Source: Macrostomum lignano
Taxonomy: Eukaryota
DNA length: 51,082 nucleotides
Reading direction: 5' to 3'
NCBI GenBank assembly: GCA_002269645.1
Contig: NIVC01004307.1
Span: 1-51,082, forward strand
Shown in pieces: positions 40,301-46,300 of the stretch. Position 1 is the first letter of the stretch. Each line of letters opens with the position of its first letter. A model generated the notes under the pieces. The model did not search any database. It saw nothing but the letters and a program-made list of their open reading frames with translations, and had not been told where the DNA came from. The position numbers were made by a program, and so were the translations under genes.

Positions 40301-43300
40301 TCACCACGAAGTGGCAGAATCGCCGGATTCTGTCAATTTTTTGCGAGTTTGTACTAACGTGAGCTTTGTTCGATCAAAGCTACTCACTGAGTAGTAATGA
40401 GCGGCAAGCTTACGGGTTGGTGGGTCCCAGGAAAAACATTGAGCTGTAGGGCAGAATCGGCTTGCCAACGCCAATGAGCATGTCGCCTTCTTCCTGCTGG
40501 CCCGACTCTTCCGACTCTGCCGAATGTTTTGTAGAAATAAAAAAATGTTAAATAAGCTCAATCATGAACTAATAAACTCACTCACAAAACTCGTGAGTCA
40601 TAAACTCGCTCATGAGATCATTAACTAATGCACTAACTCGCTTACTTGAAATCACCCATGAAGTCACTCATGAAGTCACTCATGAAGTCACTCATGAAGT
40701 CCCTCATGAAGTCACTCATGAAGTCACTCATGAAGTCCCTCATGAAGTCACTCATGAAGTCACTCATGAAGTCACTCATGGAGTCACTCATGGAGTCACT
40801 CATGAAGTCACTCATGAAGTCACTCATGAAGTCACTCATGAAGTCACTCCCTCCCAGACTCGCTCACTCATCATTGCAACAAAAACCAGGCCAAATCTCA
40901 CTCTGATTCAAGATTCCCCGTTCCGCCTCCAGGCCGTTCAGTCGCCGCGACTCCGATGTGAGCTTGTCGCCCTCGCCAGGCTCCCTTGAGTCCTTGCAGC
41001 TGCTTAACGGAAGTTTGGACGCATTGGTTGCAAATGATAGTCTGGAAACCCTACCGAAGCTTCATGAATTTGCATGCTTCCAGGCGCTTACTAGTCGAAC
41101 CTTTGCGGCTCGGCAGACGAGCTCATCAGCTGGCCCGGCGTTGGCGGCACCACGTTCAGCATCGGGGCGTTCGACGTCGCCGCTGCGGGATCCGCCTGCT
41201 CGGCCTCGGCCTCGGCCTCCGTGCGCAGCATCTCCTCTCGCTTCTTTGATGTCGGAGTTCGGTGGGAGCGGGCGGGAGTGTGAGGAGGCAATGTAGGACC
41301 TTCGGGACCTTCGGGACCTTCGGGACCTTCGGGACCTTCGGGACCTTCGGACCTTCGGGACCTTCGGGACCTTCGGGACCTTCGGGACCTTCGGGACCTT
41401 CGGGACCTTCGGGACCTTCGGGACCTTCGGACCTTCGGGACCTTCGGGACCTTCGGGACCTTCGGGACCTTCGGGACCTTCGGGACCTTCGGGACCTTCG
41501 GGACCTTCGGGACCTTCGGGACCTTCGGGACCTTCGGGACCTTCGGGACCTTCGGGACCTTCGGGACCTTCGGGACCTTCGGGACCTTCGGGACCTTCGG
41601 ACCTTCGGGACCTTCGGGACCTTCGGGACCTTCGGGACCTTCGGGACCTTCGAGACCTTCGGGACCTTCGGGACCTTATTTTTTAGCCTAGACACTTAGA
41701 GACAAATTTAAATAGCCGAGAGTCTCAGCTGCATCCCACAGAGTTCTCCCCTTCATCACCTCTTTCTCCTCGTTCTCGCGCTGCTCATCCATGGCCGTGA
41801 GCTCCTGAGCATTCGCCAAGTTGTCAACGGCGATGGCCAGAAACACGTTCAATAGAGTGTCTTGACGCGGTTGGTTTTCGGTTGTATTAGGTTAAGGAAA
41901 ATTCGGAAAACACGTGAAGTTCGCAGGCATTTCCATGCCGAAAAGTGCGCACTCTAAGCACGAGTCAGACAAGTGCAAGGTAAACTCAGGCTGTATAAAT
42001 GCAAATAGATATTGTAGTTTAAATAGTTCTCAGGCAGTGAATAGGAGAAATCAGTAGCGATTAAATAAGCAACGTTCATATCCGATATTATGCGATAGAA
42101 TTTATTGTTACTCAAAGTTCAATTGGGCAGCTTAAGGCAGTTTATCGCCTTCTGCTCATATTTTATCCTGCCAACGCTCGTGCAGCACGCAGAGCTGGAA
42201 TCTGGGGGAGAGCCAGACTGGGAGCTCAGATGGAGCCGGGCTGTGCACTTTACAATCGCAGTTCTCTCATTGACTGTTCAAACTTGCCGCTGCCGCCCCA
42301 TCACCAGTCTCCTGGACTCTCCTCGTCCCGGTCTCTGTGCCAATAAAAACTTTCATCATTTTTGCCTGCTCAAAAATTCCTCTCTTCCTCAGTTGTCCCG
42401 GGGTCCCCCCTGCTCCCTCAGCTTGTGGTTTGATTGATGAGTAGCCGCCACTGCTGCTGCTGCTGCTGCTAAAGAGACTGTGGCCAATAATATCCTGCAT
42501 CAGTTTTACTACAGTGCTCCCCCATCCTCTGCTCTCCAGCAGTCGGTTTTGACATTCCAGTTGGTTCACACTTCTCACGCCAGTGCTCAAGTGCCCCGGT
42601 TTCCAAGAAACCCAAGTCAGCTACTCTGATTTGTAATGAAAACCGGCATGCTTGCTATATAGAATTAAAATATGCAATGAGCTAGCGAGATGCGTATTGT
42701 AACAATTTTTAAATATTAATAAAATAAGCCAATGCAGAAGTCAGCATGCACGCTGATCGCTCCGTGAGAGTTGCAGCCTTGAACTGAACTGGTGTGCGGT
42801 GTCCGGAGCCCCAAGGTAAAGCAGCCCATTACCAGTGAGGAGTGCCGCCGAAAGTGCTCAGAATGAAAGCTAACTTAGCAACAGAGTAAAATTGAAACTC
42901 AATTGTAGGACTTTTTTTAGAAAAAATGAAGATAGAGCGAAAGTAAGCTTAATAGTGTGAAGAAATAAACAAAAAAGTGATAAACTATGTATTAAAATTG
43001 AATAAGCCAGCTGTTGCTAGGATACAGTTGCCAAACAGCACCAGCAGGATGAAATACGTGGCGTAGGCCATGCCCTGGCCCACCCCACCCTGCGACCTGA
43101 TGCCATAGTACATCACGAGGTTCCAGTCCTCTCCTGTCAGAATCTGGGCGGCGCGGTGGAACGAATAAACAAATTATTATCTCAATTCGATTTGCGTCTG
43201 ATTTAAATGAGCCATGTCAGGGCTGATCCAGTCTTCCAGTGGATAGGAAATGCTGGCGGACATGGATATTCGGGCAAAGGTTGAAGCCTGAGTTTGGGAC

Positions 43301-46300
43301 CGGGCATCGCCGGCAGAGAGGCATGCCAGTCATTTGCAGAAGCTTGGTCAAAAAAAAACTTTTACACAACTGGGAAAGCATTCGGGACTTCATGGATTGC
43401 GGATGCAATGCTGGTAGTTCATGTACAACTGAAAACTCTGGAGTCTCGTGCTGCATTAAGAGCACAGTAACAAAGCACAAACTGTCAATCAAACTCTGGG
43501 ACCCCTCGCGAAATCCCGGTGGCTTGCAAAGGATACAATTGCCGAAGAGCAGCAGATCACAAAGTAGGCCGCGGCCCACATCCCGGACGAGTTGGCAGTC
43601 CGCTGCGAGCGAATGCCCGCGTACATCACCATGTTCCAGTCCTCGCTGGTCAGCACCTGGTGCGTCCCGTGCCAAATGGGGAGGTTTACTGTCTGTCTGT
43701 CTGTCTGTCTGTCTGTCTGTCTGTCTGTCTGTCTGTCTGTCTGTGTGTCTGTCTGTCTGTCTGTCGTCTGTCTGTCTGTCTGTCTGTCTGTCTGTCTGTC
43801 TGTCTGTCTGTCTGTCTGTCTGTCTGCCTGTCTGTGTGTCTGTCTGTCTGTCTGTCTGTCTGTCTGTCTGTCTGTCTGTCTGTCTGTCTGTCTGTCTGTG
43901 TGTCTGTCTGTCTGTCTGTCTGTCTGTGTGTCTGTCTGTGTGTCTGTCTGTCTGTCTGTCTGTCTGTCTGTCTGTCTGTCTGTCTGTCTGTCTGTGTGTC
44001 TGTCTGTCTGTCTGTCTGTCTGTCTGTCTGTCTGTCTGTCTGTCTGTCTGTCTGTCTGTCTGTCTGTCTGTCTGTCTGTGTGTCTGTCTGTCTGTCTGTC
44101 TGTCTGTCTGTCTGTCTGTCTGTCTGTCTGTCTGTCTGTCTGTCTGTCTGTCTGTCTGTCTGTCTGTCTGTTTGTCAGCTGTCTGTCTGTCTGTCTGTCT
44201 GTCTGTCTGTCTGTCTGTCTGTCTGTCTGTCTGTCTGTCTGTCTGTCTGTCTGTCTGTCTGTCTGTCTGTCTGTCTGTCTGTCTGTCTGTCTGTCTGTCT
44301 GTCTGTCTGTCTGTCTGTCTGTCTGTCTGTCTGTCTGTCTGTGTGTCTGTCTGTCTGTCTGTCTGTCTGTCTGTCTGTCTGTCTGTCTGTCTGTCTGTCT
44401 GTCTGTCTGTCTGTCTGTCTGTCTGTCTGTCTGTCTGTCTGTCTGTCTGTCTGTCTGTCTGTCTGTCTGTCTGTCTGTCTGTCTGTCTGTCTGTGTGTCT
44501 GTCTGTCTGTCTGTCTGTCTGTCTGTCTGTCTGTCTGTCTGTCTGTCTGTCTGTCTGTCTGTCTGTCTGTCTGTCTGTCTGTCAGTAGCGCTCAGAAGCG
44601 CTCTCACATTTTCTGACGCTTTTTCTCACCTGAGCTGTTCATAAACCTGCTTTCTGCATATACTTATACTATTAATTTAGACAGTACTATTAACTTTGTA
44701 CTCTTATACAATTAAAAATGCTTCTTAAAGAGTTTTGCACCCAAATGTAAATTAATAGAAAGGAAATATCAAATTTACGGCAAAAAAACAAACTGTGCAA
44801 AACTACCGTAGGGGCAATCTATTAGCAATTAACATAATTAGCAAGTTAAGCAATGTCAGTGCTTATTCAGTAACGTTTTGCACCGAGCATGCAAAATTGC
44901 CGTCACTTTGCAAAGAGGGCCAATCAGTTTTAAAGTTAGGGCCTATCGATAGGGGAGGGCCACGGCCCCCACTTGCCCCCTCACCTGGCTACGCATCAAT
45001 GTCGTCAACCAGTTGATGAAGTTCTTGCTGCATGGGGTCATTGCAACTCACTATTGGACTGGTGAGTTTTGAAAAAACAACGGAGCAAAGCACAATCTCA
45101 GCTAAAAGTTCAAAACAACTCAACCAGGTATTGCCGTCTTTCATTCCCACCCGCCCGGATCTCTAAGCCAGCAGGTGAAATTGATTTTCCCATGAATATT
45201 TAAAAAGTTGGGGCGCACGAGGCGAAGCGCCTTCCCACCTGGAACACCGTGAGCAGGCCTTTGACGAATGTGTCGAAGTTCTGAGCCGGCCGGCCCTCCG
45301 GAAAGTTGAACCTGCAAGGACAACATTAGAGCCGTTTTGCATGCTGGAGGTTTTAAGCGATCGATTGAGGTGATAAAGCTCTTCCTATCCTGATCCCTGC
45401 TCACTTTCTATCCCCTGTAAATGGTCAGTAGGAGCTAGTGGAGTTCCACTTTGAGGATCGAATATATTTGGGCTTTGACGCCTCTATCATTTTTCCGTTT
45501 TTTTTTCAAGTCACTGTTTCAAGACCTGACCTTCTCAACACAGGACAGGCAGGTACTCTCTCTGCGCCCTGGGGATTGCCCTCATTGGCGAGAACAACCC
45601 AAACTACCTAACTAGGGTGCTCATTTACTGGTACTAGCTCTCCGGCACTCACTCTCCGCCGAACAGCTGCATGCCGAGCAGGGCGAAGATCAGGATGAAG
45701 AGGAACAGCAGGAACAGCAGGGAGATGATCGACCGCATCGAGTTGAGCAGGGAGATCACCAGGTTGCGCAGGGACGACCAGTACCTGGAGATGACGGGTT
45801 CAGTTCGGCCAAGATTAGCATTGAGCTTTAATCGCGCGGAGTTAGTTGAGAAGGAGACGGTGGAATTTGATCAGCAATTGTTCAGGAAGTAGCCAGTTAG
45901 CACCTCAATCGAAGTCCAGAATTGGGGGTTCAAGGTCGCAGGGTAACTACGAACAGAGGCTTGGCATTACTAAAGTGACCGTTAGGCAACAAAATGGTAA
46001 AAAATAGAGGCAATAGCATAGAAAATTTATATTCATGCAGCATACAGAGTGACACTACAGTGTGCATGCACAGCTCTAAGCGTCATATATCAAATTAAAT
46101 TAACCAAAATCCAGACATGAGCGCAAGCTTAACCACCTTGGAAGGGACCAATGTTTTCAACGCATCAGATGCTTTTATGACCCGAATGCTTTACGCGATC
46201 GAAAAATTGACCCCCCCCCTAACCCCCTAATCCCGCCGCGGGCACATCCGGCATCGCCAAATCGGCTATCGTGTTTCACCCGCGTCTTCTGCTTCAGCTC

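Follow-up and report, generated by a model that had tools for sequence, protein, structure and literature searches.

The stretch of DNA analysed here (the window) covers positions 1 to 51,082 of contig NIVC01004307.1 from the flatworm Macrostomum lignano, and most of a high-voltage-activated calcium channel alpha-1 subunit was found to be encoded on its minus strand, from the end of the window (51082) to about position 25324. The exon layout, which extends from the pore loop of domain I to the C-terminal residues ...AYWC, was drawn from stop-to-stop reading frames together with tblastn, where the query was the 'type A alpha-1' of Lineus longissimus (Lineus Cav2), the best homologue of the gene. 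Four domains, the EEEE filter motifs, the AID in the I-II linker and the IQ region are all present. The best 120 database relatives are all Cav2 ('type A') proteins from nemerteans, annelids, molluscs, flatworms and arthropods with about 65-70% identity, and a ranking of solved structures for the product gave Cav2.2, Cav2.3 and Cav2.1 (all three human) ahead of Cav1 and Cav3. Flatworm-like residues (DTFVKxLLTVFQ, as in trematodes) were also observed in the product. By these comparisons the gene is identified as a Cav2-type voltage-gated calcium channel alpha-1, of the presynaptic type. Its domain II pore region contains a pair of alternative exons whose splice signals form the subject of this work.

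The pair consists of two tandem homologous exons of the same phase (0 to 1) which share their flanking exons. Upstream of them lies a constitutive exon coding for IIS5 and P1 (45239-45311, minus strand), located by its sequence and by tblastn with Lineus Cav2 and identical in all four assembly copies of the locus. It ends at position 45239, and the U2-type donor CAG/GTGGGA at 45238 (a slash marks the exon-intron boundary) is the sole upstream donor for the two exons that follow. Alternative exon a (43537-43656, minus strand), recognised from its sequence and kept in a paralog, corresponds to residues ~658-697 of human Cav2.2; it follows the acceptor ...caccag/ and encodes a TSEDW filter motif, the P2 helix, a longer outer loop (RTANSSG) and outer IIS6. 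It measures 120 nucleotides (nt) in the window, whereas the three remaining copies have 121 nt (phase 0 to 1). Alternative exon b (43026-43143, minus strand; 118 nt, phase 0 to 1) follows the acceptor ...gcccag/ and carries the canonical TGEDW motif. Both exons read (V/I)LT(S/G)EDWN... and span the end of the P1 pore helix, the filter glutamate, the P2 helix, the outer loop and the outer half of IIS6. They are identical at 24 of 39 amino acids and at 62% of their DNA positions, and exon b is the copy closer to the orthologues, with 75% identity to Lineus against 54% for exon a. An intron of 393 nt (43144-43536, minus strand) separates the two. The shared downstream exon (41760-41860, minus strand, with a predicted 3' end) codes for inner IIS6 and for the first part of the II-III linker, and from position 41860 it completes the tyrosine codon (T/AC) of an invariant segment behind the acceptor ...gtcaag/, where a pyrimidine tract is absent.

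Both alternative exons were observed to end in donors of the minor class. Exon a is followed by the 5' splice site GTATCCTTT (43528-43536, minus strand), which fully matches the U12-type consensus /GTATCCT(TT), and exon b by GTATCCTAG (43017-43025, minus strand), in which the GTATCCT core is intact and positions +8 and +9 are off consensus. GTATCCT occurs three times on the gene strand in 51 kb, and two of these occurrences are the donors of exons a and b. The motif TTTTCCTTAAC (41891-41901, minus strand), located 30-31 nt upstream of the shared acceptor with no AG between, agrees with the U12-complementary branch-site consensus TCCTTAAC and is the only such motif in the window. Similarly, TTCCTTAAC has its single occurrence in the whole window at 41899-41891, where 0.3 would be expected. 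No CCTTRAY was found on the gene strand between 41898 and 46711, hence none upstream of exon a or exon b. The 393-nt intron is assigned a U12-type 5' end and a U2-type 3' end because it begins with the GTATCCT donor and no CCTTRAY lies upstream of exon b. At the shared acceptor, a fraction of 0.45 of the positions from -25 to -3 is pyrimidine in the window, against 0.41 in the paralog, so that no polypyrimidine tract is seen in either gene. An earlier note on this DNA, made from its letters, had described two homologous domain II pore exons at 43537-43656 and 43026-43143, each with a U12-type donor and no U12 branch point upstream, a common downstream U12 branch point at 41891-41901 and a hybrid intron of 393 nt; the exons were found exactly as claimed, GTATCCT stands directly after each, and the motifs confirm the rest.

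The factors that would read these signals are encoded in the genome, as a search for minor-class small nuclear RNAs (snRNAs), proposed in the same note, has shown. Genes for U12 (88.7 bits), U11 (89.5 bits) and U6atac (48.6 bits) were found above the Rfam gathering scores, while U4atac is represented by a candidate below its cut-off. The segments which read the 5' splice site, namely the U11 5' end AAAAAGGG and GAAAGGAGAGAAG of U6atac, are intact, and the exon a donor GTATCCTTT is able to pair with 6 positions of this U11 5' end. The branch-site motif TTTTCCTTAAC is fully complementary to the U12 snRNA segment GUAAGGAAAAU (U12 snRNA: AUGCCUUAAUCUAAUGAGUAAGGAAAAUAACGG...), with which it would form ten base pairs with one bulged A.

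A minor-class intron at this IIS6 position was found to be conserved outside M. lignano, which bears out a further statement of the note. In Paragonimus westermani an intron at the same codon and phase (phase 1, after FGN) reads GGCAATT/GTATCCTTTT ... GACCTTAAC, with 24 nt from the branch-site motif to the AG. A fish CACNA1A-like gene, again at the same codon and phase, reads GGCAACT/GTATCCTCC ... TTCCATTAAC, with 11 nt to the AG. The orthologous intron is therefore U12-type in both species, and the corresponding exon is single in both. Read-through gene models of Paragonimus and Taenia contain GNCIL..., which is T/GTATCCT translated. In all three flatworm introns the acceptor was observed to be the first AG after the motif; this has a chance of about 0.15 x 0.05 for the two Macrostomum genes and fits a functional link between motif and acceptor. 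The long gaps between motif and acceptor (24, 30 and 48 nt) may set the minor introns of flatworms apart from those of other lineages. When the genome was searched with a pattern for short U12 introns, 2 matches were obtained against 5-7 in the control, and the fetched loci contained none.

A genome search with the exon b peptide identified a second Cav2 gene, located at 403640-405000 of contig C33 and also on contigs C543 and C4487, which has the same a/b layout. Its IIS5-P1 exon has the U2 donor CAG/GTGAGC and is followed by exon a' (ILTSEDW..., 124 nt) with the donor GTATCCTTC and by exon b' (...LFGN), which continues into GTATCCTTGG and has the U12-type donor GTATCCTTG. The branch-site motif is kept as ATTTTCCTTAACC upstream of the shared exon (3341-3351 of locus L021), 48 nt from the acceptor. 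A sensitive DNA comparison showed that the paralogous loci can be aligned only at the exons, together with the first intronic bases, and at one intronic island of 17 nt and 94% identity, which is the branch-site motif. The (GACA)n microsatellite of about 224 units (43689-44583, minus strand; Tandem Repeats Finder), which occupies most of the intron 5' of exon a and stops 32 nt short of that exon, differs in length among the assembly copies of the window gene and is absent from the paralog, where the equivalent intron measures 139 nt. Because it is not conserved in the paralog, the microsatellite is probably not part of the mechanism discussed below.

The two exon types were found to have diverged to different extents between the paralogs. 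The two Cav2 genes are paralogs of considerable age, with a synonymous divergence (dS) of 0.5-1.3 in their flanking constitutive exons. Exons b and b' are identical at 37 of 39 amino acids, with a ratio of nonsynonymous to synonymous divergence (dN/dS) of 0.01, while a and a' are identical at 28 of 40 amino acids and have an in-frame 3-nt indel, a dS of 0.68 and a dN/dS of 0.37. Within the window gene, a and b have a dS of about 1.7, which is near saturation, and a dN/dS of 0.22. Purifying selection is thus seen on both exons (dN/dS 0.37 and 0.01) in a setting of unalignable introns. Exon a is in our analysis a selected exon and not a relic, because it shows a dN/dS of 0.37 and has kept its reading frame open, its AG acceptor and its seven-base donor motif across paralogs whose introns can no longer be aligned. 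The a-type exons of both paralogs have in common the serine before the filter glutamate and a 12-residue segment. Since a groups with a' and b with b', the sequences indicate that the a/b duplication is older than the gene duplication and that both types have been kept since.

Outside this pair of genes the arrangement appears to be restricted. None of the isoforms among 360 Cav proteins retrieved from other species showed two versions of the domain II pore exon, and for this reason the a/b duplication looks lineage-specific. A TSEDW protein of Biomphalaria was considered as a possible isoform and was rejected, as it belongs to a paralogous gene that is 82% identical throughout. The Cav1-type and Cav3-type paralogs of the M. 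lignano genome (nine loci) have no intron at the FGN/Y position; among the Cav genes examined, the minor intron is, by this comparison, retained in the two Cav2 genes only.

Exon a of the window lacks one C, at 43553, and is thereby shortened to 120 nt; translation across the junction to the next exon runs into a stop. The window reads GTGATCTGCTG where contigs C1427, C301 and C272 read GTGAT(C/T)CTGCTG (GTGATYCTGCTG), and the exon of these three copies is an intact one of 121 nt which ends in ...YFVILLLFGN. The missing C, to which the earlier note had drawn attention, is therefore real in the window contig and is absent as a lesion from the three other copies. Two polymorphisms were observed among the copies within exon a, and both are synonymous. 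Furthermore, in C1427 a 1-nt deletion that no other copy shares affects a G-run of the canonical exon b, and a second frameshift of the window, in an upstream alternative exon for IIS3-S4, is likewise private to the window contig. Decay of the alternative exons was considered as an explanation of the exon a and IIS3-S4 frameshifts and was rejected, because each deletion is private to one contig and the deletion of another contig falls in exon b. On comparison of the copies, the scattered 1-nt deletions are read as consensus errors or single-allele lesions and not as decay of exon a.

The three further copies were found in a search of the whole assembly. They have 98-99% identity to the window over the exon and its flanks and are 97-99% identical to the window contig (C4307) over 8 kb, and by this similarity the four contigs are taken as allelic or recently duplicated copies. 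The Mlig_3_7 assembly was made from PacBio reads with Canu and polished with Pilon, and about 180 Mb of its blocks are duplicated at >=95% identity (PMC5730564). We noticed that the Cav2 locus is present four times (C4307, C1427, C301 and C272) and the paralog three times (C33, C543 and C4487), with private 1-nt coding deletions on single contigs. This copy number and these deletions fit the redundancy and residual error of a PacBio assembly from a hidden-polyploid line.

We consider it likely that exons a and b form a spliceosome-incompatibility pair of the type known from the JNK genes, which arose independently in a flatworm Cav2 gene. An old tandem duplication would have copied the domain II pore exon plus the first bases of the ancient U12-type intron behind it; as the copy took along these first bases, each exon would have come to possess a U12 donor and a U2 acceptor, with one U12 3' end downstream for both. 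The single U2 donor at 45238 would be joined either to the acceptor of exon a or to that of exon b, and the U12 donor of the chosen exon would then be paired with the U12 3' end common to both. Choice of exon a would remove exon b as part of a U12 intron of 1676 nt. With exon b instead, exon a would be lost inside a U2 intron of 2095 nt, and exon b would be spliced onward through a U12 intron of 1165 nt. Joining a to b would require a U12 5' site to react with a U2 branch site and acceptor, a combination incompatible with either spliceosome. The lengths of the exons may provide a second safeguard, as both are 1 mod 3: inclusion of both (239 nt) or of neither would shift the frame and lead to a premature stop and probably to decay of the transcript. 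The predicted products are two isoforms with the same EEEE glutamate which differ in the residue that precedes it (S/G), in the P2 helix, in the outer loop and in outer IIS6. That both exons are used, that they exclude each other and that their products differ in function are predictions of this scheme.

Effects on permeation, block or glycosylation are a matter of speculation, because the filter glutamate is unchanged and the NSS sequon of exon a is not conserved in the paralog. The earlier note had listed two differences between the variants: TSEDW versus TGEDW stood, with the serine kept in the paralog, and the sequon, although present in exon a, is absent from a'. A preference for exon b as the default exon, by analogy with JNK2, might be read from the pyrimidine fractions at the acceptors, which are 0.73 for exon b and 0.55 for exon a in the window gene. 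We give this suggestion little weight since the contrast is not seen in the paralog.

Several observations weigh against this interpretation. The gap between branch-site motif and acceptor (30-31 nt in the window, 48 nt in the paralog) is not the short distance typical of minor introns, which in human is optimal at 11-13 nt (PMC3584512). With 45.6 bits, the U4atac candidate stays under the Rfam cut-off of 53 bits; the candidates nevertheless cover the full model, and CCAGGGGAG is complementary to CTCCCCTG of U6atac, so the candidate is a plausible one. The pyrimidine tract at the exon a acceptor is poor, and the rate of evolution is much higher for exon a than for exon b. Two amino acid changes are found in one a' allele, a' reads FGR in place of the otherwise invariant FGN, and the sequon of exon a lacks a counterpart in the a-type exon of the paralog. 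Use of exon a and exclusivity of the pair are read from the genome sequence. Lastly, frame incompatibility alone makes double inclusion unproductive, so that exclusivity may be enforced not only, or not mainly, by the U12/U2 clash.

Other readings of the locus were considered as well. Exon a could be a decaying, unused pseudo-exon, with exon b alone being spliced and the hybrid intron forming part of one long U2 intron. The frameshift of exon a in the window, its greater distance from the orthologues (54% against 75% identity to Lineus), its weak acceptor and the fact that an a-type exon occurs in none of the 360 Cav proteins retrieved from other species would all agree with this. We regard it as very unlikely, however, since the frameshift is found in one of four copies only and C1427 equally has a private deletion in exon b. 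In addition, an open a-type exon with its AG acceptor and GTATCCT donor has been kept in the paralog at a dS of ~0.7-1.3, where the indel is in frame, dN/dS is 0.37 and the introns cannot be aligned, and the a and b sequences themselves have a dN/dS of 0.22 at a dS of ~1.7. Still less credit can be given to the idea that the tandem pair is an assembly artefact made by stitching together two haplotypes or paralogs. The assembly is redundant and error-prone (PMC5730564) and there are private 1-nt deletions on the window contig, but the a-then-b order with its unique intervening intron recurs on four contigs for the gene and on three for the paralog, and the two exons are just 62% identical in DNA. 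We consider such an artefact to have next to no likelihood.

It is also conceivable that both exons are used while the minor spliceosome no longer removes these introns, or that the U12 signals are irrelevant, and that frame and decay or other regulators enforce the choice. This reading is unlikely in our judgement, though less so than that of a pseudo-exon. It can appeal to spacings of 31 and 48 nt, which are far outside the 11-13 nt optimum, and to the 1 mod 3 length of both exons, by which double inclusion or skipping would be out of frame anyway; frame incompatibility also underlies most human mutually exclusive clusters (PMC5740500). Against it, GTATCCT stands at four of four donors across the paralogs and TTTTCCTTAAC is the sole conserved intronic island. 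The downstream acceptor has no pyrimidine tract (pyrimidine fraction 0.41-0.45) and is separated from the motif by an AG-free zone, GTATCC after T is a very poor U1 site, and U11, U12 and U6atac are present with their recognition sequences intact. The same intron in Paragonimus, with its spacing of 24 nt, also speaks against this reading. Taking both sides into account, the JNK-type incompatibility pair remains the reading that we prefer.

The closest counterpart of this layout is found in the vertebrate JNK genes (MAPK8, MAPK9 and MAPK10, exons 6a/6b), where the intron between the two alternative exons has a U12 5' splice site and a U2 3' splice site (PMC1874599; PMC3584512), as the earlier note had also stated. 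In both systems, tandem homologous exons have U12 GT donors and U2 acceptors and share one downstream U12 3' end, the inter-exon intron with its U12 5' splice site and U2 3' splice site is unspliceable or predicted to be so, and the U12 site lies 3' of the cluster, as it does at the 3' side of the exons in MAPK8-10 (PMC5740500 appendix Fig. S18). The present case concerns an ion channel and not a kinase, and a flatworm and not a vertebrate; as both family and phylum differ, the origin is independent. Exclusivity has been demonstrated by experiment for JNK, whereas for the flatworm Cav2 it is predicted. In JNK2 the downstream exon is the default owing to a long pyrimidine tract that is conserved within the hybrid intron, whereas the tract of the flatworm gene is modest and is not conserved in the paralog. 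The branch-site spacing of the flatworm Cav2 is also atypically long in comparison with JNK.

Cases of this kind are rare. A genome-wide survey of human genes found U2/U12 incompatibility in MAPK8, MAPK9, MAPK10, MAPK14, CEP170 and CRTC1 only (PMC5740500 appendix), and alternative splicing that involves U12 introns is described in a review as almost absent (PMC3584512). The note had known of no such case in a Cav2 gene, and we found no report of one in the literature on U12 introns, mutually exclusive exons, calcium channels, Cav2 and Macrostomum.

Among channels, the closest precedent is NALCN, a related four-domain channel, where in many invertebrates, flatworms among them, exons 15a/15b are likewise tandem and mutually exclusive and code for the homologous part of the protein (domain II filter to proximal S6), according to Senatore et al. 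2013 (PMC3557258). NALCN is described there as switching the filter residue (E/K), whereas both Cav2 exons keep E (TSEDW and TGEDW), and no involvement of U12 splicing is reported there for 15a/15b. The NALCN orthologue of M. lignano (C1016:193324-194002) was observed to have a single K-type (TQKGW) domain II pore exon within ~2 kb either side, the identity of which was verified against the human NALCN structure. A 15a/15b pair was not seen at this locus, and U12-type motifs were not found near the exon. The NALCN pore-exon pair was considered as a second U12 case and was rejected for the M. lignano genome on the grounds of this single exon and the absence of U12 motifs.

Other calcium channels provide more distant parallels. 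Exons 12a/12b of the Lymnaea Cav3 gene are also a mutually exclusive pair for a domain II pore module in an invertebrate calcium channel, and they alter ion preference with the filter ring unchanged, as stated in the abstracts of PMC9694082 and PMC7382465. They differ from the Cav2 pair in channel class (Cav3) and in position, which is the S5-P1 turret before the pore helix, and no link to U12 splicing is described. Tandem duplicated, mutually exclusive Cav alpha-1 exons whose isoforms differ in function are known from the IS4 and I-II loop pairs of Drosophila cacophony (abstract of PMC11828482) and from pairs in vertebrate CACNA1C and CACNA1D (PMC5740500). These pairs lie at other positions of the protein, and no CACNA1 gene is on the human list of U2/U12 incompatibility (PMC5740500 appendix).

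Further alternative exons and repeats were noticed in and around the gene. A second tandem pair in the same gene codes for IIS3-S4 (48290-48179 and 47511-47399, minus strand), each exon having 113 nt when intact; its upstream copy has a GC donor (AG/GCAAGT) and a 1-nt deletion, at about 48230, that is found in the window only. A third pair of homologous exons, at 33552-33433 (120 nt) and 32755-32600 (156 nt) of the minus strand, covers IVS2 together with the IVS1-S2 loop, and either length is divisible by three. Among the oyster Cav2 isoforms in the database, this segment also occurs in two versions, so that the pair is possibly old and widely distributed. The inner-IIS6 exon is closely followed by about 43 tandem copies of a 9-nt repeat, GGACCTTCG, which extend over 41296-41677 of the window, are open in all three frames and belong either to an intron or to the II-III linker. 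No known RNA was found in an Rfam scan of 41000-46000 of the window. The Cav2 gene is followed downstream, at ~3,900-22,300 (minus strand), by a tandem series of four or more genes for Cys-loop ligand-gated channels (Pfam Neur_chan_LBD and Neur_chan_memb), and their transmembrane exons are near-identical to each other. The domain II filter motif was also observed to vary among molluscan proteins, where seven oyster Cav2-like proteins read TGADW, with alanine for the filter glutamate, and where one Biomphalaria protein reads TGADW and another paralog TSEDW.

Mutual exclusivity by U2/U12 incompatibility is a textbook mechanism which is yet very rare, with six human genes in the genome-wide survey, of which four are MAP kinases (PMC5740500 appendix). 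If the present case is true, such a layout would arise whenever an exon beside an ancient minor intron is duplicated in tandem, and the flatworm gene would provide a second, unrelated system in which to study it. A wider view is tentative and at present rather doubtful: that the switch has been kept in two flatworm Cav2 paralogs to supply interchangeable outer-pore modules which differ in permeation, block or partner binding, and that the minor spliceosomes of flatworms tolerate a spacing of 24-48 nt, beyond that of vertebrate U12 splicing. The exons form a natural pair of Cav2 domain II outer-pore variants that is open to direct comparison, and the branch-site spacing, which is long yet conserved, offers minor-intron biology a peculiarity that can be tested. 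As Macrostomum lignano is amenable to RNA interference and transgenesis, these questions are experimentally accessible.

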